This document shows positions 5,941 through 59,616 of a DNA stretch of 64,000 nucleotides, piece after piece. The DNA comes from Macrostomum lignano. Its lineage: Eukaryota. The position numbers and the translations under genes were made by a program. Position 1 is the stretch's first letter. Each line of letters starts with the position of its first letter. The DNA is taken from positions 124,001 to 188,000 of the forward strand of contig NIVC01001948.1 in assembly GCA_002269645.1 (NCBI GenBank), written 5' to 3'. The notes under the pieces are model-generated. The model searched no databases. It worked only from the letters and a program-made list of their open reading frames with translations, and had not been told where the DNA came from.

Positions 5941-6102
5941 TCGGTCAGTTCATTAGGCTGTTTAATTTAAGAAGAATGAAGTAAATATTTTAAAGAATTT
6001 TATAATTTTAAATTATAAAAATCATCAATCCTACTTTAAGTAGCATACTTAAGATGAGTAGTAAGCAGGAGGCATAATAACACATTTTGACGTAAATCAA
6101 AA

Positions 6103-30836: not shown

Positions 30837-31165
30837 TGTCGCGATTTTCCTAGTCATTTCTTAGTTCACCTTCACTTGTCTCTGTTTACTCTGTTTTCTC
30901 TCTCTCTCTCTGTCGAGCTCAATCTTGTTATTCTTATCTCTCTCTCTCCCTTGCTGCCTTCTGATTGGCTCTCCATTCTCGCCTCTCTCTTCAGTCGCGC
31001 ACTTCACCCCTCTCCTTATTATCTGGAGTCAACCCCCCTCTAAATTGGTCATTTAAATATACTTGTTTGGGCCCTGCGCCCACTTAGCTCGTACTGGCTT
31101 ATCTTAGATTCAATTTAACTCTAATTTAAATATCTCATATTTCAATCGTTAGTATTTTCTCTACA
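30837..31165. mobile_element. Solo LTR, 329 bp, inserted in LINE ORF2
   Basis: TGT...ACA ends, 5-bp TSD CCTCT; excision restores ACPL|KAYKGKKSAPWWNPEL. Confidence 0.82.
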
Positions 31166-33539
31166 CCTCTAAAGGCCTATAAAGGCAAGAAATCTGCTCC
31201 CTGGTGGAACCCAGAGCTCGGGGCCCTTCGGCGCCGAGCCAGGACCCTCCAAAGGCGAGCGCTCAAAACCAAAGACCCATCTGATATAGAGGCCTATACC
31301 CGTGCGATCCACAAGTTTAAGGGCCAAGTCAGAAGGGCCAAGACGGCCAATCGGCACCAATACTGCGAAGGGCTTGAGGGCTCTCGCCCCGTAGCCTGCG
31401 TGGTTAAGGCACTCACGAATGACCGTTTTTCTAAACTCTCTGTTGTGAAGAGACTTGATGGCTCGGTCACAGAGAGCTCTAAAGAGACTCTAGAGCTAAT
31501 GCTCAACAGTTTCTTCCCTAAATCTCCGACTCAGCAGGGCCCGCCTGACCACACCGTGGGAGGGCAAGGCCTAACCAAGTCTATGATCAACAAAGACCGC
31601 ATTATTCGAGCGGCAAGGTCCTTTAACCCGTTCAAGGCGCCTGGGCCCGACGGCATCTACCCAGCGTTCTTGCACGAGGCGGTAAAAAACCACCTCTTCC
31701 TGGACCTGCTCTGTCGTCTCCTCCGAGCTTGTGTGGAGCTGGGCTATGTACCAGTTGCGTGGAGGAAGGCCCGGGTGGTCCTCCGAGGAGTGTGGCGGGC
31801 TCAACATCCTCATGGACTCGATCCCAGCCGCCCTTCTCCTGAGCCAAAGGTATAAGGTCACTATTCAGCCTCGACACGAAGCGAGCGACAGCGCGAGCGA
31901 TTCTGAAGTCCACTGTTACACTGACGGCTCTATGAGGCATGGTCTTTCAGGCTTCGGAGCTTGCGTCTTCTTCAAGGGAGACGTGGTGTGGAGCTTCTCC
32001 TAGCACACTGGGCTTAACTCCAGTGTTTTTCAGAGCGAGGTGCTTTGCCATCAGCTCCTGCGCGGCAGAGCTGCGCCGAAGGCAGCTCAGCGGTCGGAAA
32101 TTTATTTTTCACTCTGACAGCCAAGCAGCCCTTCGAGCCCTCTACCGCTGCACCACCAGCTCCAGGTCCGTCCTGGACTGCAACACCCAGCTCAACGCGG
32201 GCTTGCGCTAGGCAACCAGGTGGAGCTCAGATGGATCCCGGGCCACGCCGGCTTCCTCGGCAACAAGCGCGCTGACCTGCTGGCCAAGGCTGGCTCCGCC
32301 GGCGCGCTGCTGGGGCCGGGCTCGGGAGCCCCCATCCCCGCCTCGGTGATCAACTCCCGCGTTAAGCGCTGGACTGACTCCGAGCATCTCCGCAGGTGGC
32401 ACGACACCCGGAATTGTAGGCAATCCCGTGCGACCGTCCCCTGCCCCTCTCCTCTCCTGCGTAGAGCCCTCCTCAGGCTCAACCGCAGAGACCTCAGAGC
32501 AGTCAGCATGGCCCTCTCCGGGCATGGCTGCTTCTCTCGCCACCGCTTCCTTCAGGGCCAGGTACCCGAGGAGCGGTGCCCCTTCTGCCGCTCAGGCAGT
32601 GAAAATCGAGCACTTTATTACTGCTAGGTTTTCACCAGGGCCAGGCTCACTCACCTCGGGCCAAACCCGGTTCTCTCCGACGTTTGCAGGCCCGAGAGCA
32701 TCCCGCTGCTCGCCCGGTACCTCAGGGACACGGGACGAGCTGATTTCTTCCCCACCGTTGGTGAGGAGGACCGCGCTGCAGGCGAGACCGACGGGTCCCC
32801 CTGAGCGACACCACTTCAACGGAAGTCATTGGTCGCCAGGGGCTAGCGGAATGGGCGGTCCCCTCCGCCTCCTCGCTGCATCCGCCGGACGCCCCCTGCA
32901 GCCAAGTCAAGACTTACAGTAATATTAACAAGCGTACGTCTATGCAAATACATGTGTGCTTTGCAGCAGCAGTTGTGTTTATGCAAATATTTTTCTCACA
33001 AGTGTACAACTACAACTTGTGTGCATGTACATGCACTGCCAACTGATTTCGTATAGTTGATAAGAGTGTATGCATGCACCGTTTGAAACTCTATGAAAGC
33101 GCAGATTTAAGAGAGTTTTGCGTTCTACACTGAAGTCTCTGTGGAACATTACCTCACCTAGATTGCTGTATAAAATACGCACGTATCAAGCGGGTAAGTG
33201 AGAGCTTTTTGTGAGCAAATTTTTATGCCTGAGATCACATGATGTGACGGATAGGTTAAGATAGAACTGCATAATAATAATTATTATTATGAAGTTAGTA
33301 GCCAGGTAGTAAGTATGTAGATGGATGTGTAGATTAGGTAGGCAATGGGTAAATTAGATAGATAAAGGGATATTATCGTAGTTAGTTAATGGTTAAATGG
33401 GTAGAAAATGTATAGATTGGTTAGTTAATGCGTAGATACAGGCTATAATGATATTGGATAAGTGTGTATACAATGCTCTTACAACGATAGGCATCTATTT
33501 GTCTCCAACAGACTTACAACAGCACTAATAATCACTTTA

Positions 33540-36500
33540 ATGGCACTCCTCGTTTGGCCATTGAACAAGCTCTATTGGACAATTTTTCTTATTAGTGTCT
33601 TCACAGTTCTACTGTTTAACGGCAGACTAGTAGTGCAAAGCGAAACTTTATTTTATAATTCGCCATTACGACAAAAAATCTCACTAAATACGCCAAATGT
33701 TCAATGGGCTCTGCGCCGTTCAGATGGTGAGCAATAAATGAAGCATTTACTGTCCCAGTTGATTGATATTCTACAAAATAAATTACACCAAACTTAACAA
33801 CTTTGTAGGTGCGATCTCAGTGCCTGGCTCGGTGCCTGGAGATGTTTACAGCGACTTACGACAGGCTGGGATAATTCCGGATCCCATCACCGAGTTTAAT
33901 GACGTCAAAACGCGTTGGGTTGCCAATGCTAACTGGACCTACGAGGCGAAGTTTTACGGTTAGTGCAGAGCCCGAGAATTTGAAAAGGTGGCCCAGCAAC
34001 TGGAGATCTGGGAGGCTGGCCCAGCAAATGAGGATCTGGGAGGCTGGCCAAGCAACTGAGGATCTGGGAGGCTGGCCCAGCAACTGGAGATCTGGGAGGC
34101 TGGCCCAGCAACTGAGGATCTGGGAGGCTGGCCAAGCAACTGAGGATCTGGGAGGCTGGCCCAGCAACTGGAGATCTGGGAGGCTGGCCCAGCAACTGAG
34201 GATCTGGGAGGCTGGCCAAGCAACTGAGGATCTAGGAGGCTGGCCCAGCAACTGAGGATCTGGGAGGCTGGCCCAGCAACTGGAGATCTGGGAGGCTGGC
34301 CCAGCAACTGAGGATCTGAGAAGCTGGCCCAGCAACTGAGGATCTGAGAAGCTGGCCCAGCAACTGAGGATCTAGGAGGCTGGCCCAGAAACTGAGGATC
34401 TGGGAGGCTGGCCCAGCAACTGAGGATCTGGGAGGCTGGCCCAGCACCTGGAGATATGGGAGGCTGGCCCAGCAACTGAGGGTCTGGGAGGCTGGCCCAG
34501 CAACTGAGGATCTGAGAGGCTGGCCCAGCAACAGAGGATCTGGGAGGCTGGTGATCCAGCAACTGAGGATCTGGGAGGCTGGCGCAGCAACTGAGGATCT
34601 GGGAGGCTGGCCCAGCAACTGAGGATCTGGGAGGCTGGCGCAGCAAATGAGGATCTGGGAGGCTGGTGACCCAGCAACTGAGGATCTGGGAGGCTGGCCC
34701 AGCAACTGAGAATCAGGGAGGCTAGCCCAGCAACTGAGGATCTGGGAGGCTGGCCCAGCAAATGAGGATCTGGGAGGCTGGTGACCCAGCAACTGAGGAT
34801 CTGGGAGGCTGGCTCAGCAACTGAGGATCTAGGAGGCTGGTGACCCAGCAACTGAGGATCTGGGAAGCTGGCCCAGAAACTGAGGATCTAGGAGGCTGGC
34901 CCAGCAACTGAGGATCTGGGAGGCTGGCCCAGCAACTGAAGGTCTGGGAGGCTGGCCCAGCAACTGAGGATCTGGGAGGCTGGTGGCCCAGCAACTGAGG
35001 ATCTGGGAGGCTGGCCCAGCAACTGAGGATCTGGGAGGCTGGCCCAGCAACTGAGGATCTGGGAGGCTGGTGACCCAGCAACTGAGGATCTGGGAGGCTG
35101 GCCCAGCAACTGAGGATCTGGGAGGCTGGCCCAGAAACTGAGGATCTGGGAGGCTGGCCCAGCAACTGAGGATCTGGGAGGCTGGCCCAGCAACTGGAGA
35201 TCTGGGAGGCTGGCCCAGCAACTGAGGGTCTGGGAGTCTGGCCCAGCAACTGAGGATCTGGGAGGCTGGCCCAGCAACTGAGGATCTGGGAGGCTGGCCC
35301 AGCAACTGAGCATCTGGGAGGCTGGTGACCCAGCAACTGAGGTTCTGGGAGGCTGGCGCAGCAAATGAGGATCTGGGAGGCTGGTGACCCAGCAACTGAG
35401 GATCTGGGAGGCTGGCCCAGCAACTGAGGATCTAGGAGGCTGGCCCAGCAACTGAGGATCTGGGAGGCTGGCCCAGCAACTGAAGGTCTGGGAGGCTGGC
35501 CCAGCAACTGAGGATCTGGGAGGCTGGTGGCCCAGCAACTGAGGATCTGGGAGGCTGGCCCAGCAACTGAGGATCTGGGAGGCTGGCCCAGCAACTGAGG
35601 ATCTGGGAGGCTGGTGACCCAGCAACTGAGGATCTGGGAGGCTGGCCCAGCAACTGAGGATCTGGAAGGCTGGCGCAGCAACTGGAGATCTGGGAGGCTG
35701 GCCCAGCAACTGAGGGTCTGGGAGGCTGGCCCAGCAACTGAGGATCTGAGAGGCTGGCCCAGCAACTGAGGATCTGGGAGGCTGGCCCAGCAACTGGAGA
35801 TCTGGGAGGCTGGCCCAGCAACTGAGGATCTGAGAAGCTGGCCCAGCAACTGAGGATCTGAGAAGCTGGCCCAGCAACTGAGGATCTAGGAGGCTGGCCC
35901 AGAAACTGAGGATCTGGGAGGCTGGCCCAGCAACTGAGGATCTGGGAGGCTGGCCCAGCACCTGGAGATATGGGAGGCTGGCCCAGCAACTGAGGGTCTG
36001 GGAGGCTGGCCCAGCAACTGAGGATCTGAGAGGCTGGCCCAGCAACAGAGGATCTGGGAGGCTGGTGATCCAGCAACTGAGGATCTGGGAGGCTGGCGCA
36101 GCAACTGAGGATCTGGGAGGCTGGCCCAGCAACTGAGGATCTGGGAGGCTGGCGCAGCAAATGAGGATCTGGGAGGCTGGTGACCCAGCAACTGAGGATC
36201 TGGGAGGCTGGCCCAGCAACTGAGAATCAGGGAGGCTAGCCCAGCAACTGAGGATCTGGGAGGCTGGCCCAGCAAATGAGGATCTGGGAGGCTGGTGACC
36301 CAGCAACTGAGGATCTGGGAGGCTGGCTCAGCAACTGAGGATCTAGGAGGCTGGTGACCCAGCAACTGAGGATCTGGGAAGCTGGCCCAGAAACTGAGGA
36401 TCTAGGAGGCTGGCCCAGCAACTGAGGATCTGGGAGGCTGGCCCAGCAACTGAAGGTCTGGGAGGCTGGCCCAGCAACTGAGGATCTGGGAGGCTGGTGG

Positions 36501-39500
36501 CCCAGCAACTGAGGATCTGGGAGGCTGGCCCAGCAACTGAGGATCTGGGAGGCTGGCCCAGCAACTGAGGATCTGGGAGGCTGGTGACCCAGCAACTGAG
36601 GATCTGGGAGGCTGGCCCAGCAACTGAGGATCTGGAAGGCTGGCGCAGCAACTGGAGATCTGGGAGGCTGGCCCAGCAACTGAGGGTCTGGGAGGCTGGC
36701 CCAGCAACTGAGGATCTGAGAGGCTGGCCCAGCAACTGAGGATCTGGGAGGCTGGCCCAGCAACTGGAGATCTGGGAGGCTGGCCCAGCAACTGAGGATC
36801 TGAGAAGCTGGCCCAGCAACTGAGGATCTGAGAAGCTGGCCCAGCAACTGAGGATCTAGGAGGCTGGCCCAGAAACTGAGGATCTGGGAGGCTGGCCCAG
36901 CAACTGAGGATCTGGGAGGCTGGCCCAGCACTGGAGATATGGGAGGCTGGCCCAGCAACTGAGGGTCTGGGAGGCTGGCCCAGCAACTGAGGATCTGAGA
37001 GGCTGGCCCAGCAACAGAGGATCTGGGAGGCTGGTGATCCAGCAACTGAGGATCTGGGAGGCTGGCGCAGCAACTGAGGATCTGGGAGGCTGGCCCAGCA
37101 ACTGAGGATCTGGGAGGCTGGCGCAGCAAATGAGGATCTGGGAGGCTGGTGACCCAGCAACTGAGGATCTGGGAGGCTGGCCCAGCAACTGAGAATCAGG
37201 GAGGCTAGCCCAGCAACTGAGGATCTGGGAGGCTGGCCCAGCAAATGAGGATCTGGGAGGCTGGTGACCCAGCAACTGAGGATCTGGGAGGCTGGCTCAG
37301 CAACTGAGGATCTGGGAGGCTGGTGACCCAGCAACTGAGGATCTGGGAGGCTGGTGACCCAGCAACTGAGGATCTGGGAGGCTGGCCCAGCAACTGAGGA
37401 TCTGGGAGGCTGGTGACCCAGCAACTGAGGATCTGAGAGGCTGGTGGCCCAGCAACTGAGGATCTGGGAGGCTGGCCCAGCAAATGAGGATCTGGGAGGC
37501 TGGTGACCCAGCAACTGAGGATCTGGGAGGCTGGCCCAGCAACTGAGGATCTGAGAAGCTGGCCCAGCAACTGAAAATCTGGGAGGCTGGCCCAGCAACT
37601 GGAGATCTGGGAGGCTGGCCCAGCAACTGAGGGTCTGGGAGTCTGGCCCAGCAACTGAGGATCTGGGAGGCTGGCCCAGCAACTGAGGATCTGGGAGGCT
37701 GGCCCAGCAACTGAGCATCTGGGAGGCTGGTGACCCAGCAACTGAGGTTCTGGGAGGCTGGCGCAGCAAATGAGGATCTGGGAGGCTGGTGACCCAGCAA
37801 CTGAGGATCTGGGAGGCTGGCCCAGCAACTGAGGATCTGGGAGGCTGGCCCAGCAAATGAGGATCTGGGAGGCTGGTGACCCAGCAACTGAGGATCTGGG
37901 AGGCTGGCCCAGCAACTGAGGGTCTGGGAGGCTGGCCCAGCAACTGAGGATCTGAGAGGCTGGCCCAGCAACTGAGGATTTTGGAGGCTGGTGACCCAGC
38001 AACTGAGGATCTGGGAGGCTGGTGACCCAGCAACTGAGGATCTGGGAGGCTGGCCCAGCAACTGAGGATCTGGAAGGCTGGCCCAGCAACTGGAGATCTG
38101 GGAGGCTGGCCCAGCAACTGAGGGTCTGGGAGGCTGGCCCAGCAACTGAGGATCTGAGAGGCTGGCCCAGCAACTGAGGATCTGGGAGGCTGGCCCAGCA
38201 ACTGAGGATCTGGGAGGCTGGTGACCCAGCAACTGAGGATCTGGGAGGCTGGCCCAGCAACTGAGGATCTGGGAGGCTGGTGGCCCAGCAACTGAGGATC
38301 TGGGAGGCTGGCCCTGCAACTGAGGATCTGGGAGGCTGGCCCAGCAACTGACACTCTGGGAGGCTTGTGACCCAGCAACTGACGATCTGGGAGGCTGGCC
38401 CAGCAACTGAGGATCTGGGAGGCTGGCCAAGCAACTGAGGATCTGGGAGGCTGGTGACCCAGCAACTGAGGATCTGGGAGGCTGGCCCAGCAACTGAGGA
38501 TCTGGGAGGCTAGCCCAGCAACTGAAGATCTGGGAGGCTGGCCCAGCAACTGGAGATCTGGGAGGCTGGCCCAGCAACTGAGGGTCTGGGAGGCTGGCCC
38601 AGCAACTGAGGATCTGAGAGGCTGGCCCAGCAACTGAGGATCTGGGAGGCTGGCCCAGCAACTGGAGATCTGGGAGGCTGGCCCAGCAACTGGAGATCTG
38701 GGAGGCTGGCCCAGCAACTGAGGGTCTGGGAGTCTGGCCCAGCAACTGAGGATCTGAGAGGCTGGCCCAGCAACTGAGGATCTGGGAGGCTGGCCCAGCA
38801 ACTGAGCATCTGGGAGGCTGGTGACCCAGCAACTGAGGTTCTGGGAGGCTGGCCCAGCAACTGAGGATCTGGGAGGCTGGCGCAGCAAATGAGGATCTGG
38901 GAGGCTGGCCCAGCAACTGGAGATCTGGGAGGCTGGCCCAGCAACTGAGGGTCTGGGAGGCTGGCCCAGCAACTGAGGATCTGAGAGGCTGGCCCAGCAA
39001 CTGAGGATCTGGGAGGCTGGCCCAGCAACTGGAGATCTGGGAGGCTGGCCCAGCAACTGAGGGTCTGGGAGTCTGGCCCAGCAACTGAGGATCTGAGAGG
39101 CCGGCCCAGCAACTGAGGATCTGGGAGGCTGGCCCAGCAACTGAGCATCTGGGAGGCTGGTGACCCAGCAACTGAGGTTCTGGGAGGCTGGCCCAGCAAC
39201 TGAGGATCTGGGAGGCTGGCGCAGCAAATGAGGATCTGGGAGGCTGGTGACCCAGCAACTGAGGATCTGGGAGGCTGGTGACCCAGCAACTGAGGATCTG
39301 GGAGGCTGGTGGCCCAGCAACTGAGGATCTGGGAGGCTGGTGACCCAGCAACTGAGGATCTGGGAGGCTGGTGACCCAGCAACTGAGGATCTGGGAGGCT
39401 GGCCCAGCAACTGAGGATCTGGGAGGCTGGTGACCCAGCAACTGAGGATCTGGGAGGCTGGCCCAGCAACTGAGGATCTGGGAGGCTGGTGACCCAGCAA

Positions 39501-42500
39501 CTGAGGATCTGAGAGGCTGGTGGCCCAGCAACTGAGGATCTGGGAGGCTGGCCCAGCAAATGAGGATCTGGGAGGCTGGTGACCCAGCAACTGAGGATCT
39601 GGGAGGCTGGCCCAGCAACTGAGGATCTGAGAAGCTGGCCCAGCAAATGAGGATCTGGGAGGCTGGTGACCCAGAAACTGAGGATCTGGGAGGCTGGCCC
39701 AGAAACTGAGGATCTAGGAGGCTGGCCCAGCAACTGAGGATCTGGGAGGCTGGCCCAGCAACTGAGGGTCTGGGAGGCTGGCCCAGCAACTGAGGATCTG
39801 AGAGGCTGGCCCAGCAACTGAGGATCTGGGAGGCTGGCGCAGCAAATGAGGATCTGGGAGGCTGGCCCAGCAACTGGAGATCTGGGAGGCTGGCCCAGCA
39901 ACTGAGGGTCTGGGAGGCTGGCCCAGCAACTGAGGATCTGAGAGGCTGGCCCAGCAACTGAGGATCTGGGAGGCTGGCCCAGCAACTGGAGATCTGGGAG
40001 GCTGGCCCAGCAACTGAGGGTCTGGGAGGCTGGCCCAGCAACTGAGGATCTGAGAGGCTGGCCCAGCAACTGAGGATCTGGGAGGCTGGCCCAGCAACTG
40101 AGATCTGGGAGGCTGGCCCAGCAACTGAGGATCTGGGAGGCTGGCCCAGCAACTGAGGATCTGGGAGGCTGGCCCAGCAACTGAGGATCTGGGAGGCTGG
40201 TGACCCAGCAACTGAGGATCTGGGAGGCTGGCCCAGCAACTGAGGATCTGGGAGGCTGGCCCAGCAACTGAGGATCTGGGAGGCTGGCCCAGCAACTGAG
40301 GATCTGGGAGGCTGGTGACCCAGCAACTGAGGATCTGGGAGGCTGGTGGCCCAGCAACTGAGGATCTGGGAGGCTGGTGACCCAGCAACTGAGGATCTGG
40401 GAGGCTGGTGACCCAGCAACTGAGGATCTGGGAGGCTGGCCCAGCAACTGAGGATCTGGGAGGCTGGCCCAGCAACTGAGGATCTGGGAGGCTGGCCCAG
40501 CAACTGAGGATCTGGGAGGCTGGCCCAGCAACTGAGGATCTGGAGGCTGGCCCAGCAACTGAGGATCTGGGAGGCTGGCCCAGCAACTGAGGATCTGGGA
40601 GGCTGGCCCAGCAACTGAGGATCTGGGAGGCTGGCCCAGCAACTGAGGATCTGGAGGCTGGCCCAGCAACTGAGGATCTGGGAGGCTGGTGACCCAGCAA
40701 CTGAGGATCTGGGAGGCTGGCCCAGCAACTGAGGATCTGGGAGGCTGGCCCAGCAACTGAGGATCTGGGAGGCTGGCCCAGCAACTGAGGATCTGGGAGG
40801 CTGGCCCAGCAACTGAGGATCTGGGAGGCTGGCCCAGCAACTGAGGATCTGGGAGGCTGGCCCAGCAACTGAGGATCTGGGAGGCTGGCCCAGCAACTGA
40901 GGATCTGGGAGGCTGGTGACCCAGCAACTGAGGATCTGGGAGGCTGGCCCAGCAACTGAGGATCTGGGAGGCTTGAGGATGAGGCCCAGCAACTGAGGAT
41001 CTGGGAGGCTGGCCCAGCAACTGAGGATCTGGGAGGCTGGCCCAGCAACTGAGGATCTGGGAGGCTGGCCCAGCAACTGAGGATCTGGGAGGGAGGCTGG
41101 CCCCAGCAAACTGAGGATCTGGGAGGCTGGCCCAGCAACTGAGGATCTGGGAGGCTGGCTCAGCAACTGGGGTTATGGGAGGCTGGTCCAGCAACTGAAG
41201 ATCTAGGAGGCTGGCCCAGCAAACCTTCTGCTCCACTAAAATAAACAATAAACGAGTTCATGAAAGAAAGGGCAACTAGTTATTGAATATTAGCTTTCTC
41301 TGCTAAATGAATATATAATAAAAGAAACATTTTTTCAATCAGTAAGTTTTATTCTGCATCAAGTTGTTTCACCCTGTATCTGGATAGGTTCGCATTGGCC
41401 ATGCTTGTACAGTAGCAATAGGGTGGTCATCCACTCTGTCAGATGAGACAGTTAATACGAGCTGTGATGGCTGATACAAGCGTAGACGAGGTAATCAGGA
41501 ATAAATAAATATGTTTGAAGTTAACACGTGAAGACATTTGTTAACAGCCAGAGTCACAGCAACCGAATCATAGCCAGAATGACGGCGGTGGCGAAGGCGG
41601 TAAAATTCCAGCCTCGAAGGCTGGCGGCAGAGTTGCAGTAGTCCCCGCTGTTGCACGCTCTACAGTTGCTATAGGAGTCGAGCTTTGAGCACTCTCCACA
41701 GCCGGCGAAGAAGATCTATGATGATGGGGACAATACTAGTGTTGTTGAAGACTGTCTAACAGGTTGACGTCACTGTCTAACAGGTTGACGTCACTGTCTA
41801 ACAGGTTGACGTCACTGTCTAACAGGTTGATGTCACTATCTAACAGATTGACGTCACTGTCTAACAGGTTGACGTCACTGTCTAACAGGTTGACGTCACT
41901 GTCTAACAGGTTGACGTCACTGTCTAACGGGTTGACATCACTGTCTAACAGGTTGATGTCACTGTCTAAACAGGTTGATGTCACTATCTAACAGATTGAC
42001 GTCACTGTCTAACAGGTTGACGTCACTGTCTAACAGGTTGACGTCACTGTCTAACGGGTTGACATCACTGTCTAAACAGGTTGATGTCACTATCTAACAG
42101 ATTGACGTCACTGTCTAACAGGTTGATGTCACTGTCTAACAGGTTGACGTCACTGTCTAAACAGGTTGATGTCACTATCTAACAGGTTGATGTCACTATC
42201 TAACAGGTTGACGTCACTGTCTAAACAGGTTGACGTCACTGTCTAACAGGTTGACGTCACTGTCTAACAGGTTGACGTCACTGTCTAACAGGTTGATGTC
42301 CCTGTCTAACAGGTTGACGTCACTGTCTAACAGGTTGATGTCACTGTCTAACAGGTTGATGTCACTATCTAACAGGTTGAAGTCACTGTCTACCAGGTTG
42401 ACGTCACTGTCTAACAGGTTGACGTCACTGTCTAACGGGTTGACATCACTGTCTAAACAGGTTGATGTCACTATCTAACAGATTGACGTCACTGTCTAAC

Positions 42501-45500
42501 AGGTTGATGTCACTGTCTAACAGGTTGACGTCACTGTCTAAACAGGTTGATGTCACTATCTAACAGGTTGATGTCACTATCTAACAGGTTGACGTCACTG
42601 TCTAAACAGGTTGACGTCACTGTCTAACAGGTTGACGTCACTGTCTAACAGGTTGACGTCACTGTCTAACAGGTTGATGTCCCTGTCTAACAGGTTGACG
42701 TCACTGTCTAACAGGTTGATGTCACTGTCTAACAGGTTGATGTCACTATCTAACAGGTTGAAGTCACTGTCTACCAGGTTGACGTCACTGTCTAACAGGT
42801 TGACGTCACTGTCTAACAGGTCAAAGATGCTGTCTAACCGTTAAAGAGATTTTTATACTTCAATTCTATAAAATTATAAAATTAGACATTACTTCAGCAC
42901 TCCGACTTGAGTCTGAAACTCACATCGATAGTAGCATAGGTAAAGCTGTACTCATAGCAATAGCTACTTTCACATCTCCTCCTCCTTCGGCTGCTGTGAA
43001 GATAGTCTCCATTGCTGTAGTAACAGTTCAGAACAGGCGGTCGAGTATTGCAGTAGCTGGCAGTGCACGCTTTGCAGGTGGTGTAAGAATACCCGGAGCA
43101 GGTGCCACAACCAGCAAAGTTGTCCTGTACAGGGTCAAAATTCGGTTTTGCTGCGGTAGACTTAACGAGGTAAGTGCACAGTGGTTTTATACTTATTTAA
43201 AATTGCTTGGGTTAGATCAAGGAGTAATGAGAAACGTCGGATGTGAGTCAGTCGTGTCGATAAGGAGTCAGTGGTGTCGATAAGGATTCAGTTGTGTCAG
43301 GAAGGAGTCAGTGGTGTCAGGAAGGAGTCAGGTGTCAGGAAGGAGTCAGTGGGTGTCCGGGAAGGAGTCAGTGGTGTCAGGAAGGAGTCAGGTGTCAGGA
43401 AGGAGTCAGGTGTCAGGAAGGAGTCCGGAGGTGTCAGGAAGGAGTCCGGAGGTGTCAGGAAGGAGTCAGGTGTCGTCAGGAAGGAGTCAGTGTTGTCAGG
43501 AAGGAGTCAGTGGGTGTTGAGAAGGAGTCAGTGGTGTTGGGAAAGAGTCAGTGGTGTTGGGAAAGAGTCAGTGGGTGTCGGGAAAGAGTCAGTGGTGTTG
43601 GGAAAGAGTCAGTGGTGTTGGGAAAGAGTCAGTGGTGTTGGGAAAGAGTCAGTGGGTGTCGGGAAAGAGTCAGTGGTGTTGGGAAAGAGTCAGTGGTGTC
43701 GGGAAAGAGTCAGTGGTGTTGCGAAGGAGTCAGTGGTGTCGGGAAGGAGTTAGTGGTGTTGCGAAGGAGTCAGTGGGTGTCGGGAAGGAATCAGTGGGTG
43801 TCAAGAAGGAGTCAGTGGGTGTCGGGAAAGAGTCAGTGGTGTTGGGAAAGAGTCAGTGGTGTCGGGAAAGAGTCAGTGGTGTTGGGAAAGAGTCAGTGGT
43901 GTTGGGAAAGAGTCAGTGGTGTTGGGAAGGAGTTAGTGGTGTTGCGAAGGAGTCAGTGGTGTCGGGAAGGAGTTAGTGGTGTTGCGAAGGAGTCAGTGGG
44001 TGTCAAGAAGGAGTCAGTGGGTGTCGGGAAAGAGTCAGTGGTGTTGGGAAAGAGTCAGTGGTGTTGGGAAAGAGTCAGTGGGTGTCGGGAAAGAGTCAGT
44101 GGTGTTGGGAAAGAGTCAGTGGTGTTGGGAAAGAGTCAGTGGTGTTGGGAAAGAGTCAGTGGTGTTGGGAAAGAGTCAGTGGTGTTGGGAAAGAGTCAGT
44201 GGTGTTGGGAAAGAGTTAGTGGTGTTGCGAAGGAGTCAGTGGGTGTCGGGAAGGAATCAGTGGGTGTCAAGAAGGAGTCAGTGGGTGTCGGGAAAGAGTC
44301 AGTGGTTTCAGGAAGGAATCAGTGGGTGTCGGGAAGGAATCAGTGGGTGTCAAGAAGGAGTCAGTGGGTGTCGGGAAGGAGTCACTGGTTTCAGGAAGGA
44401 ATCAGTGGGTGTCGGGAAGGAATCAGTGGGTGTCAGGAAAGAGTCAGGCTAAAACGAGCGTGTGACGCACTTCTCCGTAGTCATATGTGTAGCAGCTGCT
44501 GTCAAAGGCACAGAGGGTCGTAGTTCCGTTGCTGGTATAGCTAGTCGATGAGGACCTCGAGTAGCAGGTGATCGACGCAGCAGCGTTCGCTGTGAAAATT
44601 AAATGATGGGCTGCGTGATCAATCTGTCTCTATGGAAACTGTCCCTAACTCTTCCGTCTAACAGGTGTCTCCTCTGTGTCTAACAGGTGTCTCCTCTGTG
44701 TCTAACAGGTGTCTCCTCTGTGTCTAACAGGTGACTCCTCTGTGTCTAACAGGTGTCTCCTCTATGTCTAACAGGTGTCTCCTCTGTGTCTAACAGGTGA
44801 CTCACTGTGTCTAACAGGTGTCTCCTCTGTGTCTAACAGGTGTCTCCTCTGTGTCTAACAGGTGTCTCCTCTGTGTCTAACAGGTGACTCCTCTGTGTCT
44901 AACAGGTGTCTCCTCTGTGTCTAACAGGTGACTCATCTGTGTCTAACAGGTAACTCCTCTGTGTCTAACAGGTGTCTCCTCTGTGTCTAACAGGTGACTC
45001 ATCTGTGTCTAACAGGTGACTCACTGTGTCTAACAGGTGTCTCCTCTGTGTCTAACAGGTGTCTCCTCTGTGTCTAACAGGTGTCTCCTCTGTGTCTAAC
45101 AGGTGACTCCTCTGTGTCTAACAGGTGACTCCTCTGTATCTAACAGGTTACAGAGAATTAATATGGGAAACTTACAGATAAAAGCAGCCAAAATGGCAAC
45201 AGAGACAATCAAGTATTTCATTTTTGCAATCCGTATTTCTTAGAAGTTTGTTGCTTGTCGTTGCTTTTTGAAAAAAAATTACTGAGAAATCCTGCCATTT
45301 ATAACACTCGGTTGCCATGGTGAATACGAGGGGGGGGGAGAGAGAGATAGAAAAGCTTCTGTTTTTTTGGTTGAACAGTGCGAGCGTAGCAATTTGCGTG
45401 CGAGAAAAACATATTTTTCACAAATAGGACAGAGAAATAGAGGTCAGGTGAAGTGAGAGAGATGCAGATGCCAGAAGGACAATTAAAAGAGAAAAAAAGC

Positions 45501-48500
45501 AAATTTGGGGCTTGTCCGACAGACTCAGTAGCCGCTCTGTGCATTGCTTAACGAATAGATGAGGTTGGCTCAACTGGTCTAAGAAATTTATTGTGCGTTT
45601 TCAGATTTTATACACCATTGTCCTGAATTCCCCTGTCCACAATGCTCCGAAAGTAGCAATGTTTGGCAATAGCGAAAACACACAATAATATAAGCATATT
45701 TTTTTGCTCAGAATGAACGCGAAGTGGATTTAAGTCTCAGTGGAGGCTGCGCAGATTCAAAAACAAGACAGAAATGTGACGCAAAGTGGCAGAATGGCTA
45801 TGCTTGTGACAATTCATGCTATTGTTTCACAAGAAAGTTAGGAAAGCAGTTGAGAGCTCACTGCATGCTTGTCAATGCTCAAGTATTGAACGCAAAGCAA
45901 TTAAGTACCGGCGTACTGAGATACTGAGAGTGGCTGTTGGGTGTGGCCAGGCTTCTAGTTCTACGAATACTCTGCGGAAATTTTGTGGAAAATTTCTAAA
46001 AAAAACTGAGCTGGCTATTTTGTAAACATCTAAACCGAATAGCTGTTTCCTAACATCAGAGTTTAATGCAATGATGCTTTATGTATTAAAGTTGCCACGC
46101 TATGCCCTCGGAGACAGAAAGATAGAAAAAATCCGGGAGGCTGCCCAGCAACTGAGGATCTGAGAGGCTGGCCCAGAAACTGAGGATCTGGAAGGTGGCC
46201 CAGCAACTGACACTCTGGGATGCTGGCCCAGCAACTGAGGATCTGGGAGGCTGGCCCAGTAACTGCGGATCTGAGAGGCTGGCCCAACAACTGAGGATCT
46301 GAGAGGCTGGCCCAAAAAAACTGAGGATCTGGAAGGTGGCCCAGCAACTGACACTCTGGGATGCTGGCCCAGCAACTGACACTCTGGGAGGCTGGCCCAG
46401 CAACTGACACTCTGGGAGGCTGGCCCAGCAACTGAGGATCTGGGAGGCTAGTGACCCAGCAACTGAGGATCAGGGAGGCTGGCCCAGCAACTGAGGATCT
46501 GGGATGCTGGCCCAGCAACTGGGGATTTGGGATGCTGGCACAGCCACTGAGGATCTGGGAGGCTGTCGCAGCAACCTGCTGAGCGGTGGTGGCTGCTCAG
46601 CAACCTACGGTCTAGGAGTTCGCTTAGAAAGGACTTTAAGCAACAATTTTCAACATAAATATTGCTTTACGTTTGAAAATTTTCAGTCAACCACAGCGCT
46701 GCCCAATCATCGGCCGCAATAGACTTGGTACTAGATGGTGTTGACACCATCGGTCAGGTGATTCTGAACAATCGTCATCTAATAGCCAGCTGCGATAACT
46801 ACTGGAGAGAGTACCGAATCAGTGTGAAGAGCTTGTTAGTTGTAAGTTGCTTGCTAAAATTTCAGGACTTTGGAGCGTTTATAATAAAGAATCTATGTAG
46901 GTCCACCCTGACGCAACGCTCTCAGCGACATTTTCCCACAACCAAGTACTGCTGAGGCGATTCCATTTTGCTTCTTGGTGGCGCTACTGTTGTGGCATAT
47001 TTTCTAGTCAAGCCTTACAAATGGGTTCACTGACCTAAAAAAAGTTTTGACAGGGGTCAAATCAACAAATGTATCCCCCCTCAGGTTGGAGAGAACAACC
47101 TCACAGTCAGCCTGACGTCTCCCATTGTCTATGCAAGACAAGCTGCAGAGAATTACGCGTCGAAGTTCGGCTATCCAGTGCCGCCAGACTGTCCGCCGTT
47201 GACCTACAACGGCGAGTGTTACTTCAATTTCATTCGCAAGCCAGCCTATTCGTTCAGCTGGGACTGGGGCCCGGCGGTACCAACGTCGGGACTTTGGTGA
47301 GTCGTTGAACTTTTGAAGTTCATTTAGTTGTGGTGTCGTTGGTGTCATAGTGGGTTTATGGGTGCATTCACTGACAGCTTTAAAAGTTAAGAAGAGTCGA
47401 CTACGGTGAGTTCTCTATTGAGATGGTGGAATTGTAGTAGACTGCTACACCTTGGGTTACCTAGGTAGCGGATTTTCTATTTTCTATTCTAGTGTATTTT
47501 ATTCACTAAGCCATAGAATATTCACGGAATCCTCAATAATTATTCTTACGACTACAAAAAAAGTATTAAAATTCGCATAAGCCTACTTTTTTTATAAAAT
47601 TTCTCAGTAGCACGATGCAAATTTATGAAAATACGACCTATATTGCAAATGTTTGCAAATATCCGTTTTGCCTCCTTAATTTTACTCACAAAGAGTGTGG
47701 CTAGTGTAAAATGTAATTCTTGCACGAGAAATGTTCTTCAAAATACATTCTCAATCGAGGGTTCGGATTACTAACGAAACATTGCTGATATTGGTAAGCG
47801 GCTACAAAATGTCTCCCGCAGGCGCGCAGTCTATTTGGACCTGTACTCGGGTTTGGCCATAGACTATGTCAAATTTACGGCCTCACCGAGTCTCGATAGC
47901 AGCAGCAACGCTTGGTGGGCAATGGCAACTGCTGGTGTGAAATTTGGCGATAGGTTCGATCAGAAAATTGGTCAGGTGTGCATCGTTGCTCAGATAGACG
48001 AACTGACGGAATCTTTGAAACGATGCGTCAAACTGCCCTCAGAGACTTCGCCCCAACCGTCTATAATTGATGCAGCAGAGAGTAATTTCACTGTCGACGT
48101 TAGATTTGATCAGATTGTAAGTAATTGGATTTATATTTCTCCGAAAATATTAGATAATTTACTATTACGCTCGTAGTTGTTTTCTACTCAACCAACAATT
48201 AGCAACCAACAACTCGAAATGTTATTATTAAAGATTGATACGAATATATATGGCGGAATTTGGCGTTCATTTTTTCGTAGCATAAAGTTCATTGTTCTGG
48301 GTGTGTGATGATGTGGCTTTAAACTTCTTGTTTTATGTGTAGTTCTAAACTTTTAGTTGAGGATGTGGCTTTAAACTCTTTGTTGCGTAGATTTGACTCT
48401 AAACTATTTGTTCTGAATGTGGCGCATCGGTAAGGTTTTTAATTTGTCGCCTTAGAGACTAAAAGTTACTTTGACAGACTCTGGTCCTTCGTGAATCTAG

Positions 48501-51500
48501 CTCGCACAAGTTGTAATCGCAAAACTCTTCATTCTGTGTGAACTCAGAATTAAACTTAATTGCCTTGGATGTGACGCCAAAGTCTTGGTTTTTCGCTTGA
48601 ATCTTAAGTATTTTTGTGAGTTCTTGCGCTAAAAAACAGCATTAAATCAAATCAACTTGAACAGATCAATCCTCAGCTTTGGTGGCCAAACGGTTACGGC
48701 AGTCAGCGTCTGTACACCCTTCGAGTTCGTCTGTGCCTTGATGGTCCAGACTGTCGTCTGCTGGACAACTGGGAAACCCGACGGGTAGCGTTTCGTCAAG
48801 TTCAACTGCTACAAAATTCGATTGGTAATGAACTTGGTCAGGGACTCAATTTCAATCTGGTGGTCAATAATCGGCCGGTGTTTATTAAAGGCTCGAATTT
48901 TGTACCGATTGGGATGAGCATTCCGGGAGCGGATGTTAGCGACTATGATTGGTTGATGAGGTCGGCTGCTGCTGCTGGCATCAACATGCTACGCGTCTGG
49001 GGTGGAGGGGTGAGTGCTGGTTGGTCGACTCTCTGTGTGAGTTTACCGTAGTTTATGTCATTAATATTCGCCATAGAAATGATCTAACAAGCTGCAATAT
49101 TTTACTTTACTTATGACCTTCGGGATTTCTTTGTTTGACCTTCTGAACTTCCGAGTCTGAACTTCTGAACTTTCGAGCCTGACGTTCTGAGCTTCCGAGT
49201 CTCATCCCCTAAACTTCCGAGTCTCACCCCCCTGAACTTTCGAGTCTCATCCCCCTGAACTTTTGAGTCTCATCCCTGAACATCCGGGTCTCATCGTCTA
49301 AACTTCCGAGTCTGACCTTCTGAACTTACGGAAAATCTCAGTCAAGATTAAGCCTAGGCTGTACAAATCCATCCCGATTGATATTGAGCAAATTACGAAT
49401 TTTATATATTAGTAAAACCACAGTTGTCATCTTCAACTCTCTTTTCACCTGATGAAATCCAATCGCAATCAGACAATCGAACGAGCCGAATTCTATGACC
49501 TCGCTGACCAGCTGGGCATAATGATTTGGCAAGATTTCCCATTCGCCTGCGCTCTCTATCCTACTGACGAAAAGTTTCTGTCAACAGTGAGGTCGGAAGT
49601 TCGAGCCACTGTTCGCCGGCTTCAGCACAGAGCCAGTCTGGCCGTTTGGGTTGGCAACAACGAGAACGAAGGCGCTCTGGCCAACGACTGGTGGTCATTG
49701 TGGGCCAACCGAACCGAGCGTTACTATGACGACTATAGAAAACTGTACATGCGATTGGTCAGACAGCAGGTGGTTGCTGAGGACTCTACTCGACTGGTGC
49801 TATTATCGTCGCCTAGTAACGGAGACGCTACAGAGTGGGAGGGTGGCATTGCTCACCAGCCGCAGAGCACACTGTTTGGCGACGGTGAGAGTTAACGAAT
49901 TTTCGGTGCTGACAGGACGATGGTTTTAGATGAACGTTCCAGCGAAATGGTTGCTCAATTCCAGAAAATAGCGTTTGTGGTTGTTATGAAGCAAACGTGT
50001 CCTTTAAGGAAAACTATTGATTTCAGTAACGGGTCACAAGGTTGGGGGAGGACGAAGCATTGGCATGTCCCCCATAGCTTTCACTTTAGCTTTTACCCTC
50101 ACCTCTGTGTGCTCCAACATAAGACGTAAGTGTCCGTTACGTGATAGAAGTGTCCATTATGACATTTAGCATCCATTAGGAAATAGAAGTGTCCATTTCA
50201 AGGAAATCGTGAAGACTTGGGCGGCACTTTGTACACAATCGAGACCAAGTGAGTAAACAAAGATTAAATTTATGTATTTTAACACCCTCTCACAGTTCAC
50301 TTCTACAGCTACACAGAGGACATGTGGCTACCAGAGACTACGCCGCTGGCCAGATTAATGTCGGAATTCGGTTTCCAGTCTCATCCAAGCCTCATCACGG
50401 TACTGTCGGCAACTCGCGACCCAAGGAACATCGGCATTGATACTAATTTCACCTTGCACAGAGAGCATCAACCGAACGGCACTCTGACCATTGCCCGGCA
50501 CAATGCCAGACACTTTGCCAGTCAGGTGCCCAAGTGGCTGATTGGCGTGAACGATGACGTCATTGGGAAGCTGCTTGTACGCAATTTTTCGGTGCCGTCT
50601 TCTGAGGTTTGTTAATTTTTCTTCCAAGGCTATGAAATATGGAAATTTGTTATGAGATGCTACTGAAACTTCGAAAGAGGCTTCGCGGGTTGCATGTGGG
50701 CTTTGCCTTAATCGATAGTAATGCACCTTCTCAACTTCCGAATTATAAAGCGAGAACTTGTTTATTTTGTTAGAGGCTGTGCTGTATTATTGTGTTCTCA
50801 AAACTGACATATTGATTGAGAAGTGGGTTTTACCATAGATAAAACTTGGTCCACAAAAGAGAATTCGTGATAGAACAGCTGATGGAACAGCTTATTCGTT
50901 TATCTACTGACATTTCTAGGAAAGATAGGTTCGGTGAACTGGTCTTCAGTGAAAATCACACCAGAAAACCTCCGAGGGTCGGGTTCTTCTACTCCAGTTG
51001 TCTACGAATAATTGGCTAATGAGGCTTGTATTTGTATCGATTTTGTTAAAAATACTTCTTCAGTTAAAACAGCTCACAGACCGCCTAGCAACGTACGCGT
51101 ACCAGTCTTACGCTAGTCAGATCGATCAAGCTGAAATTTATCGTCGAATAACTCATCAACACGCATTCAATCGATGCCGCCTGCGGTCGGCTGCAAATCA
51201 AGCTAAAGGTCTAGAGGGCATGTCTTCCGGTGTGATGTACTGGCAGCTCAACGATGTCTGGTCCGCGCCCACCTGGTCAAGCATCGAAGTCACCGGGGCT
51301 TGGAAAGCGACGCACTATTACGCAGCGCGTTACTATGCCAACAGACGGCTTGCTATAGCGTTGGCTGACAGCGAGCAAAGGATAGTTGAGGCTTTCTACA
51401 TCCGGGATTCCAATCCGAACCAAAGAGGATCTGAGCAGATCGAAGTTCGCTTCGACTGCTACGATGTTGATAGCCTGGCTAGGCTAAATAGTTGGACTAT

Positions 51501-53472
51501 CATAAAGAACTCCGTGAGTGGTTTTGTAGGTAAAAAGCTTAGTAACGAACTAGCCAATTCCAACCCCTGTTGGGGCTTGCTATCCTAATTCTATCCTTGG
51601 TTGCTCCCCACAAAAAACTCCATGAGGCTGTCTTTATCATGAAAATTTCCACAATATATAGAATCCCTTTCTCATTCAGATCATGATTTCGACATTCACC
51701 AGATAGCTCGTAGCAAGCATACTCCGATAGAAAGCATCCCCGATAGCTAACATCTTCCAGAAGCAAGCAATCTCATCAATTCCGCCAGTAAGCCTTGGCT
51801 CTCTTAGCAATCCCCCCTCTGTAAGCCTTGCAGTATCAATAGTTCTCTTCGTAGGCCTTGGCATCTCAGAAATTACCCCAGTAAGCCTTGTAATATCAAT
51901 AGAGTATGTGTGCGCTTCGACTTGCCCTGAACTACTGTGACTAAAAGTGGTAAAAAGAAACTACAAAAATCCGTAAACATGTACTTTTCAGACATCGCCA
52001 AACTGCCCCACTGAACTCTTTCGCCAATCTGAAGCTGATCTGCTTAAACGCTGCAATTGCAGCCTCGCCAGCAACTGTCTTTTAGAAGCAAAACTCGTTA
52101 CAAACTGGAACAGACAGAACGGAGCAGAGCCTGATGTTCAACCGGAGCAGTACTATTTTGATGTGCCGAATAATTTTAAGCGACTTAAAAGTCCTTCATT
52201 GGTAAGGGAATCGATAACGCACTTGAAAGTACACACTGACATGAGATTATAAAGTCGCAAAAACAGGATGGATGGCAAATACTGTGAAGGTCTGATAGCT
52301 GCAGCGGTGTTAATTAAAGGAATGGTATTAAGGGGTTAGAGATTCTCACTGAAGGATCGGCACTGAGGGATAAGGATGCTCACTGAAGGATCGGCACTGA
52401 GGGATAAGGATGCTCACTGAAGGATCGGCACTGAGGGATAAGGATGCTCACTGAAGGATCGGCACTGAGGGATAAGGATGAGGGATAAGGCAATGAGGGA
52501 TAAGCGAATGAGGGATAAGGATGCTCACTGAAGGGTCGGCACTGAGGGATAAGGATGAGGGATAAGGCAATGAGGGATAAGGGAATGAGGGATCGGATGC
52601 TCACTGAAGGATCGACACTGAGGGATAAGGATGAGGGATAAGGCAATGAGGGATAAGGGAATGAGGGATCGGATGCTCACTGAAGGATCGACACTGAGGG
52701 ATAAGGATGAGGGATAAGGCCATGAGGGATAAGGGAATGAGGGATCGGATGCTCACTGAAGGATCGACACTGAGGGATAAGGATGCTCACTGAAGGATCG
52801 ACACTGAGGGATAAGAATGAGGGATAAGGGAATGAGGGATAAGGGAATGAGGGATCGGATGCTCACTGAAGGATCGGCACTGAGGGATAAGGATGCTCAC
52901 TGAAGGATCGGCACTGAGGGATAAGGATGCTCACTGAAGGATCGGCACTGAGGGATAAGGATGCTCACTGAAGGATCGGCACTGAGGGATAAGGATGCTC
53001 ACTGAAGGATCGGCACTGAGGGATAAGGATGCTCACTGAAGGATCGACACTGAGGGATAAGAATGAGGGATAAGGGAATGAGGGATAAGGGAATGAGGGA
53101 TCGGATGCTCACTGAAGGATCGGCACTGAGGGATAAGGATGCTCACTGAAGGATCGGCACTGAAGGATATAAGGATGCTCACTGATGAGATCAGTGCTGA
53201 TGAGATGTGAACTCACTCACCTCACATTGCAGTCTGTAGACGTGACTAAGATCAGTCAGCAGCATTTTCGCATAGACCTAACATCAGGTCAGACAACGCT
53301 ATACGCCGTGAATCTGCAGTTCCTATGCCCGTGGCTAACTAGGGCAGTATTATCTGACAATGCCTTTCATATGACGGCGAAAAAGCGTTCATTAGAACTT
53401 CTAGTGCCCGCCGTTGGCGACTCAAGAAGTGCAAAAGATATCAAAGAATGTTTACTGGTTCACTTTCTGTAA
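33540..53472 (+). CDS. MANBA: Beta-mannosidase (GH2), about 988 aa; exons 33540-33726, 33809-33958, 46687-46841, 47085-47296, 47822-48116, 48665-49009, 49473-49884, 50296-50606, 51064-51513, 51992-52201, 53233-53472
   Basis: Motifs VPGDVYSDL, LDGVDT, FSWDWGP, LWWPNGYG, KGSN, NMLRVWGGG, WQDFPFACALYP, GNNENE (acid/base), GDVHFY, SEFGFQS (nucleophile), YWQLNDVW; all introns GT-AG and in phase; hydrophobic N-terminus; the donor of exon 8 could be 50576 instead. Confidence 0.95.
33961..41238. repeat. 7.3-kb array of a 28-bp unit (CCCAGCAACTGAGGATCTGGGAGGCTGG; 31-bp variants), roughly 250 copies, bounded by TAGTG...CACTA
   Basis: Direct periodicity 33985-41220; short unique ends TAGTGCAGAGC and GCTCCACTA form an imperfect inverted pair. 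Confidence 0.97.
41554..45221 (-). CDS. Nested antisense gene: secreted, GPI-anchored protein with two 8-Cys three-finger (Ly6/uPAR-like) domains, 175 aa; exons 45221-45176, 44589-44471, 43124-42924, 41715-41554
   Basis: MKYLIVSVAILAAFISNAAASITCYSRSSSTSYTSNGTTTLCAFDSSCYTYDYGEDNFAGCGTCSGYSYTTCKACTASYCNTRPPVLNCYYSNGDYLHSSRRRRRCESSYCYEYSFTYATIDIFFAGCGECSKLDSYSNCRACNSGDYCNSAASLRGWNFTAFATAVILAMIRLL*; donors GTAAGT/GTGCGT/GTGAGT, acceptors CAG/CAG/TAG, phases 1,0,0; candidate AATAAA at 41353-41348. Confidence 0.88.
41750..42835. repeat. 21-bp minisatellite TCACTGTCTAACAGGTTGACG filling intron 3 of the nested gene
   Basis: About 50 tandem units. Confidence 0.95.
43255..44445. repeat. 20-21-bp minisatellite GAAAGAGTCAGTGGTGTTGG filling intron 2 of the nested gene
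   Basis: Tandem units with length variants. Confidence 0.95.
44655..45148. repeat. 22-bp minisatellite GTGTCTAACAGGTGTCTCCTCT filling intron 1 of the nested gene
   Basis: About 22 tandem units; shares TGTCTAACAGGT with the 41750 array. Confidence 0.95.
46134..46570. repeat. Second, short and diverged array of the 28-bp family at the 3' end of MANBA intron 2
   Basis: Same unit and orientation as 33985-41220. Confidence 0.92.
49140..49325. repeat. Degenerate short tandem repeat (CTGAACTTCCGAGTCT...)
   Basis: Several imperfect units in MANBA intron 6. Confidence 0.7.
52347..53165. repeat. 34-bp minisatellite GAGGGATAAGGATGCTCACTGAAGGATCGGCACT with shorter GAGGGATAAGG subunits
   Basis: Tandem units in the last MANBA intron. 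Confidence 0.95.

Positions 53473-54048: not shown

Positions 54049-59616
<5,568 letters not shown>

Follow-up and report, generated by a model that had tools for sequence, protein, structure and literature searches.

A gene nested in a beta-mannosidase intron of the flatworm Macrostomum lignano most likely encodes a divergent tandem Ly6/uPAR protein

Proteins of the Ly6/uPAR (LU) superfamily are ubiquitous in animals and have already been described in flatworms. A signal peptide, LU domains, and a hydrophobic tail form the standard layout of the Ly6 proteins that are anchored by glycosylphosphatidylinositol (GPI), and the core disulfides of the LU domain, in ten-cysteine numbering, are 1-5, 4-6, 7-8, and 9-10. 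The genes of the superfamily consist of a signal-sequence exon followed by two exons per domain, and the intron that splits the domain lies at the loop 2 tip (PMC6600238). The gene considered here, Mlig005947, occupies positions 41554-45221 on the minus strand of a 64,000-nucleotide stretch of the Macrostomum lignano genome (the window; assembly GCA_002269645.1, contig NIVC01001948.1, positions 124,001 to 188,000 of the forward strand), where it is nested in an intron of the beta-mannosidase gene MANBA on the opposite strand. The gene is real and already annotated; what is new is its assignment as, most likely, a divergent tandem LU protein.

The flatworm protein most readily compared with it is Sm29 (SmLy6D), a GPI-anchored tegument protein of Schistosoma mansoni, in which a signal peptide likewise precedes two LU-type domains in tandem and a hydrophobic GPI-type signal at the C-terminus (PMC4492491). 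As with Mlig005947, its similarity to classical Ly6 proteins is very low, and it was long thought to be without family (PMC4492491). Sm29 comes from the tegument of a parasite and Mlig005947 from a free-living worm, and there is no detectable sequence relationship between the two, an exhaustive phmmer scan of 1.84 billion representative proteins having returned M. lignano proteins only. An earlier note on this DNA, made from the letters alone, had named Sm29 as an architectural parallel; the likeness as a double LU-domain flatworm protein stands (PMC4492491), and no specific relationship was detected in the scan. The 7-8 disulfide is missing from domain 1 of Sm29 and is lost in the N-terminal LU domains of mammals, whereas both domains of Mlig005947 retain the equivalent cysteine pair.

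The short-chain toxins of snakes (erabutoxin 5ebx, toxin alpha 1iq9, and mambalgin) have the same eight-cysteine framework without the loop-I (2-3) disulfide. They have in common with Mlig005947 the order C...C...CY...GCG(x)C...C(xx)C...CN and a domain of ~60 amino acids, and they are its best fold and profile matches. The toxins are single-domain, secreted proteins with adjacent CC and GCGC, whereas Mlig005947 has two domains, an anchoring-type tail, GCGxC, and CxxC; in taxonomic terms, they represent unrelated lineages of this superfamily. The vertebrate multi-LU GPI proteins, such as uPAR, C4.4A/LYPD3, Haldisin, and the products of a zebrafish two-LU cluster, likewise consist of tandem LU domains only and have introns at the loop II tip (PMC6600238). 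In vertebrates, a separate pair of exons with phase-1 introns on either side encodes each LU domain (PMC6600238), whereas Mlig005947 lacks an inter-domain intron and its intradomain introns are of phase 0.

The minus-strand sequence from 41400 to 45400 was read and its four exons were spliced into a coding sequence of 528 nt, which encodes 175 amino acids and a stop: MKYLIVSVAILAAFISNAAASITCYSRSSSTSYTSNGTTTLCAFDSSCYTYDYGEDNFAGCGTCSGYSYTTCKACTASYCNTRPPVLNCYYSNGDYLHSSRRRRRCESSYCYEYSFTYATIDIFFAGCGECSKLDSYSNCRACNSGDYCNSAASLRGWNFTAFATAVILAMIRLL. All three introns are of the GT..AG type, with the donors GTAAGT, GTGCGT, and GTGAGT and the phases 1, 0, and 0, in agreement with the four-exon model and intact open reading frame (ORF) of the earlier note. 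The phase-0 introns that the note had placed in both domains are found where it put them, just 5' of xxFAGCG, at E55|D56 and D122|I123, two or three residues ahead of FAGCG. Its junction numbers keep the ORF intact when taken as the last and first bases of exons; taking them as intron ends was rejected, since stop codons arise.

The full-length product matches GenBank PAA62339.1/PAA72061.1 (Macrostomum lignano BOX15_Mlig005947g1/g2) with 100% identity; this "hypothetical protein" is also the UniProt entry A0A267ENB8, and near-identical copies (g3, g4, which is partial, and g5) are in the databases as well. The annotated gene on NIVC01001948.1 spans exactly 3668 bp, equal to the exon model. The GenBank annotation of this assembly (Mlig_3_7) was built only from RNA sequencing (RNA-seq) transcripts through StringTie/TACO, a de novo transcriptome, the TBONE pipeline, and TransDecoder (PMC5730564); the reads were therefore assembled into a spliced transcript of the minus strand with these junctions. 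Transcription and splicing of Mlig005947 are thus shown indirectly, via the transcript-based annotation. The description of the gene as hidden and likely to be missed by annotation accordingly falls, and the absence of minus-strand spliced transcripts, which the note had named as evidence that would overturn it, is answered in favor of the gene, again indirectly, by an RNA-seq-based model of the same span. The ORF is not a chance ORF because the identical protein is in GenBank, the 3668-bp span matches, four genomic copies keep the exons, and three paralogous genes keep the intron positions.

The phmmer scan detected no homologues outside M. lignano. Its hits within the species comprise A0A1I8HQT5 (two domains, 49% identity), Mlig005402 (two domains, 34% identity), and Mlig007435/Mlig031483 (four domains and a Ser/Thr-rich stalk; 371 amino acids in Mlig007435g1), to which a profile search added Mlig014447 (seven domains; 604 amino acids in Mlig014447g1). 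Four or five repeat-rich proteins in the phmmer list were dismissed as low-complexity artefacts, three of them after reading and one from its table row. Word-indexed searches gave no match with a 10-domain profile and M. lignano proteins only with a full-length profile, and tblastn of the family domains found no further copies in the 64-kb window. At the level of detectable sequence similarity, the family is Macrostomum-restricted, with members of two, four, and seven tandem domains. The automatic UniProt names of its members (TNFR-Cys, Laminin EGF-like, and Pacifastin domain-containing) find no support in Pfam scans. The gain for annotation is that Mlig005947, Mlig005402, Mlig007435/031483, Mlig014447, and A0A1I8HQT5 can be re-labelled as one divergent tandem LU family, probably GPI-anchored, in place of "hypothetical", "Secreted", "Laminin EGF-like", "TNFR-Cys", and "Pacifastin".

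An alignment of 16 domains of the family follows the pattern C-[YFW]...C...C-[YFH]...[AG]-C-G-x-C...C-x-x-C...C-N, in which the eight cysteines, the glycine of C-G, and the asparagine after the last cysteine are invariant. An LU domain is characterized by 60-90 residues with 8 or 10 cysteines in a stereotyped order; all 16 domains have the eight invariant cysteines within ~60-75 residues, and the order and spacing of these cysteines align with those of short-chain three-finger toxins. The C-N that marks the domain (PMC6600238, PMC4492491) is likewise present in 16/16 domains, and the spacing between the last two cysteines is 4-5 residues, within the 3-5 of the Ly6 definition (PMC4492491). The canonical G-C-G-C reads G-C-G-x-C in the domains of Mlig005947. 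An N-glycosylation sequon in loop I recurs in most N-terminal-type domains. The paralogues, at 34-49% identity, keep all 16 cysteines and the intron positions, and long-term purifying selection on the family therefore follows.

The signal peptide is split by a phase-1 intron, and every domain is split between Cys3 and Cys4. The junction E55|D56 corresponds to positions 35|36 of the structural model of domain 1, at the loop II tip, where the chain turns from strand 28-33 into strand 36-41. Mlig005402 and Mlig007435, the latter in each of its four domains, have their signal-peptide and intradomain introns at the same positions. The symmetrical, mostly phase-1 introns that flank each LU domain elsewhere are absent here: none of the three gene structures examined has an inter-domain intron, and exon 3 of Mlig005947 runs from the second half of domain 1 straight into the first half of domain 2. 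Even in a case that sequence models miss, this early-branching flatworm has thus kept the LU intron at the loop II tip, whose position is therefore a useful marker for cryptic LU genes. As a separate observation, a 55-bp tandem repeat (9.2 copies, 97% matches) at 4797-5301 of the Mlig007435 locus has its start within coding exon 5 (4639-4842) and extends into the intron that follows, which suggests tandem amplification of the exon end together with its donor.

The domains are most likely divergent LU, or three-finger, domains, a call on which profile matches, structure prediction, gene structure, and architecture converge. Searched against PDB sequences, the 10-domain profile found snake three-finger toxins in 18 of 19 matches, aligned over the whole domain, and the 16-domain profile did so in 50 of 51, with best E-values of 0.0017 (a weak toxin) and 0.0022 (mambalgin). 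Comparison by hhalign with a small, approximate alignment of canonical LU domains gave P 4.9e-4, and the weak, sub-threshold Pfam matches of single domains given below are likewise to Toxin_cobra-type and UPAR_LY6. AlphaFold2 (AF2) modeled domain 1 (residues 21-85, from the 10-domain alignment) with a predicted local distance difference test score (pLDDT) of 90.8 and a predicted template modeling score (pTM) of 0.75; the model has five strands, at 2-7, 18-22, 28-33, 36-41, and 53-55, in three-finger order. When this model was compared with the PDB by Foldseek, all 50 matches among those listed were three-finger proteins (best E 0.0095). They include short neurotoxins (template modeling score, TM, 0.6-0.73; probability up to 1.00), CD59 (TMq 0.70-0.72, probability 0.99), SLURP-1, Prod1, uPAR, Lynx1, GPIHBP1, and TGF-beta-family receptors. 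Modest Foldseek E-values are usual for domains of 60 residues. The structural comparison proposed in the earlier note thus yields a predicted three-finger fold for domain 1, and its call of a divergent Ly6/uPAR-like family agrees with the AF2 and Foldseek results, the profile matches in the PDB, and the loop-II intron.

Several observations weigh against this assignment. No Pfam family reaches its cut-off for the full-length protein, the paralogues, or single domains: the best single-domain matches, each to one domain, are sub-threshold (Toxin_cobra-type, E 0.008; UPAR_LY6, E 0.14), and the gathering thresholds of PF00021 (UPAR_LY6), PF00087, and PF21947 (snake toxin models) are not reached. 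No single sequence or Foldseek match is statistically strong, the best E-values being the 0.0017 and 0.0095 given above. For domain 1, AF2 had a shallow alignment to work from, with 10 paralogous domains, and may have recognized the cysteine pattern rather than independent covariation. AF2 performed poorly on the full-length protein (5 sequences, pLDDT 50); even so, Foldseek with this model, of qualitative use only, placed uPAR first (E 0.03), and nearly all matches were three-finger proteins, which speaks for the assignment. SmLy6 proteins have the N-terminal C-x-x-C (2-3 disulfide) of the Ly6 definition and a Cys8-Cys9 spacing of 0-1 residues (PMC4492491), whereas in the Mlig005947 family, with its eight cysteines, the first two lie 10-25 residues apart without an N-terminal C-x-x-C, and the spacing is two residues in 16/16 domains. 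This invariant C-x-x-C confirms that the CxxC...CN ending differs from the canonical CC...CN, as had been remarked from the sequence. Because two of the three strict SmLy6 motifs fail, membership is at the level of the superfamily, by fold and gene structure, and in no curated sequence family. Finally, searches of the literature and supplements found no expression-site or functional data for Mlig005947.

Taken as a whole, the best explanation is that Mlig005947 is probably the precursor of a GPI-type-anchored, double-LU surface glycoprotein. Its 16 cysteines, at 24, 42, 48, 61, 64, 72, 75, and 80 and at 89, 106, 111, 128, 131, 140, 143, and 149, form two eight-cysteine units, each of which closes with C-N. 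Read by eye, the N-terminus is hydrophobic and has an A-A-A|S cleavage motif; by eye and hydropathy profile, the C-terminus consists of S151-A-A-S154, an 8-residue spacer, and a 14-residue hydrophobic tail. By the same means, the GPI-type pattern of signal peptide, small residues, spacer, and tail recurs in the paralogues, and the architecture first proposed (signal peptide, two eight-cysteine domains, and GPI-type tail) is supported by the cysteine positions and hydropathy. The mature part is unusually rich in serine and tyrosine (23 Ser and 17 Tyr in 133 residues). Loop I of the membrane-proximal domain is basic, with RRRRR in Mlig005947 and RTKK, KSETKK, and SRKDKK in its paralogue counterparts, and may, speculatively, be a binding or processing site.

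Judged from these features, the N-terminal signal peptide would direct the protein to the endoplasmic reticulum and would probably be cleaved after A18-A-A20. The two tandem domains of ~60 amino acids are predicted to fold as three-finger domains with four disulfides each, for which the likely connectivity, in the eight-cysteine numbering of snake short-chain toxins, is Cys1-3, 2-4, 5-6, and 7-8. Domain 1 probably carries an N-glycan on N36, at its loop I tip, and the C-terminal signal (S151-A-A-S154, spacer, and tail) is probably replaced by a GPI anchor near S151-S154. The double-LU glycoprotein would then lie on the outer leaflet, where, by analogy with known LU proteins (PMC6600238), its protruding loops would bind partner proteins. 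Known LU roles include receptor or co-receptor, channel modulator, junction organizer, and protective surface protein, and the present data favor none of them.

The C-terminal stretch could instead be no GPI signal at all, and the product a secreted, soluble double three-finger protein of toxin-like, defensive, or glandular function. In favor of this, the tail has only 14 residues, Arg173 among them, and the closest profile and fold matches are secreted snake toxins with the same eight-cysteine framework. All family members, however, whether of two, four, or seven domains, have a signal peptide and a comparable short hydrophobic tail after small residues with no cytoplasmic residues beyond it, whereas in secreted LU proteins little sequence follows the C-N motif (PMC6600238). 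The longer paralogues also carry Ser/Thr/Pro-rich segments, just before the tail in Mlig007435 and as the linker that precedes the final two domains of Mlig014447, of a kind typical of surface-displayed proteins. A soluble product is thus unlikely.

That the domains have a cysteine-rich fold peculiar to this lineage, convergent on LU domains and outside the Ly6/uPAR superfamily, is more doubtful still. This reading would account for the lack of a significant Pfam LU match and of homologues outside M. lignano in the exhaustive scan, for CxxC in place of the hallmark CC, and for the probability of only 32% in the hhalign comparison given above. The PDB matches of the profile are, however, almost exclusively three-finger proteins, the confident AF2 model matches only three-finger structures among those listed, the asparagine after the last cysteine is invariant, and the exon layout is typical of LU genes in both its phase-1 signal-peptide intron and its loop II tip intron. 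Convergence is unlikely because both the fold and the intron position would have to converge.

M. lignano DV1 carries large duplications, and its assembly is highly redundant (PMC5730564). Four full genomic copies (loci L001, L002, which is the window, L005, and L006) have identical exon boundaries and intact ORFs. Their coding sequences vary at four sites, of which two are synonymous and two change an amino acid, Y3S within the signal peptide and A152V within the putative omega region; the mature domains are invariant. With only four variable sites, an analysis of selection among the copies is uninformative. The introns range over 586-2227, 1274-1571, and 760-1706 bp through differences in minisatellite copy number. 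That this is a decaying, non-functional copy or a transcript-assembly artefact yielding no functional protein is very improbable: the gene is 75% minisatellite, lies in the intron of another gene in a highly redundant assembly (PMC5730564), and goes unmentioned in the publications searched, but against it stand four copies whose ORFs are intact, whose splice sites are identical, and whose mature domains are unchanged, together with paralogues that conserve 16 cysteines and intron positions at 34-49% identity.

Searches of full-text literature and published supplements returned no mention of Mlig005947 or its paralogues, and a literature search for Macrostomum together with Ly6 or three-finger gave nothing relevant. 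A bolder proposal, which we regard as a long shot, is that the LU family with eight cysteines, an invariant CxxC, and two to seven domains is a Macrostomum-specific system of surface coat or recognition. Such a system could possibly act on the epidermal or gamete surface, or as a free-living counterpart of the neodermatan tegumental Ly6 antigens, e.g. Sm29. If this were true, its study in a worm tractable to transgenesis would show the roles of tandem LU proteins before parasitism evolved.

The exons and introns of Mlig005947 and the first exons of its host gene are listed in Table 1. Minisatellites make up ~75% of the 3668-bp nested gene, with one array filling each intron (Tandem Repeats Finder). 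The arrays of intron 1 (44656-45148) and intron 3 (41751-42821) have a common core, ACCTGTTAGACA. On the sense strand of MANBA this core reads TCTAACAG|GT, i.e. a branch-point-like CTAAC followed by a juxtaposed acceptor- and donor-like AG|GT, in ~70 repeats within the host intron.

Table 1. Coordinates of the nested gene Mlig005947 and of the 5' part of the beta-mannosidase gene in the window
Feature	Position	Strand	Description
Mlig005947 exon 1	45176..45221	-	46 nt; ATG and most of the putative signal peptide (MKYLIVSVAILAAFI + 1 nt); donor GTAAGT of the phase-1 intron 1
Mlig005947 intron 1	44590..45175	-	586 bp, phase 1; 22-bp minisatellite x22.5 at 44656-45148
Mlig005947 exon 2	44471..44589	-	119 nt; end of signal peptide and N-terminal half of LU domain 1 (Cys1-Cys3), with N36-G-T sequon in loop I; stops at loop II tip
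Mlig005947 intron 2	43125..44470	-	1346 bp, phase 0; 20-bp minisatellite x59 at 43245-44447
Mlig005947 exon 3	42924..43124	-	201 nt; C-terminal half of domain 1 (FAGCGxC...CxxC...CN), short RPPV linker, and N-terminal half of domain 2 with RRRRR in loop I
Mlig005947 intron 3	41716..42923	-	1208 bp, phase 0; 21-bp minisatellite x51 at 41751-42821
Mlig005947 exon 4	41554..41715	-	162 nt including TGA; C-terminal half of domain 2, small residues N150-S-A-A-S (candidate omega site), polar spacer, and 14-residue hydrophobic tail
Host exon 1 (inferred start codon)	33540..33726	+	MALLVWPLNKLYWTIFLISVFTVLLFNG...QWALRRSD; hydrophobic N-terminus; donor GTGAGC
Host exon 2	33809..33958	+	AISVPGSVPGDVYSDLRQAGIIPDP...NWTYEAKFY; ~42% identical to human MANBA residues 36-85; donor GTTAGT
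Host intron 2	33959..46686	+	12.7 kb; holds the nested gene (opposite strand) and ~7.7 kb of 28-bp minisatellite
Host exon 3	46687..46865 (3' end approximate)	+	after ttttcag; VNHSAAQSSAAIDLVLDGVDTIGQV...; joins exon 2 in frame, phase 1

Nested antisense genes are not unusual in animal genomes. The host was recognized by tblastn with an approximate human MANBA sequence as query, which found plus-strand beta-mannosidase exons at 33808-33958, 46719-46865, 47094-47297, 48650-49012, 49479-49883, 50295-50516, and 51076-51339, with E-values down to 7e-35. Exons 2 and 3 join in frame, and intron 2 as given in Table 1 therefore encloses the nested gene. At the paralogous locus L005, a GenBank gene of 988 amino acids with a Glyco_hydro_2_N2 domain (1754-17417 of that locus) likewise encloses the nested gene on the other strand. 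The tblastn exons, the in-frame join, and this annotation together uphold the placement of the gene antisense in MANBA intron 2, as first suggested from the sequence. The GenBank beta-mannosidase model of the window itself (47922-53472, plus strand) is truncated: it has 720 amino acids and no Pfam match on record, and it omits the exons at 33540-47297. Antisense nesting in a beta-mannosidase intron packed with minisatellites illustrates the genome architecture of M. lignano.

The nested gene is flanked on both sides by a 28-bp minisatellite (GGCTGGCCCAGCAACTGAGGATCTGGGA) at 33959-41260 and 46131-46575, which accounts for ~7.7 kb of host intron 2 and has a GC content of ~0.62 and strong GC and AT skew. 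At ~30075-32624 on the plus strand lies a degraded retrotransposon without long terminal repeats, in which fragments of an endonuclease-reverse transcriptase (Exo_endo_phos_2, E 6e-8) and of an RNase H (E 2.5e-6) are in different frames. Downstream of MANBA, a minus-strand gene contains a TIR-domain fragment (TIR_2, E 6.6e-5) at 55364-55606, with neighboring ORFs to ~57600; the duplicate locus L001 has a TIR_2 gene of 762 amino acids in the equivalent place. More minisatellite arrays, at 1-1020, 6900-9750, 26100-26800, 56960-57420, and 58450-59270, generate long spurious ORFs in several frames and are consistent with the reported 15% content of simple and tandem repeats in the M. lignano genome.

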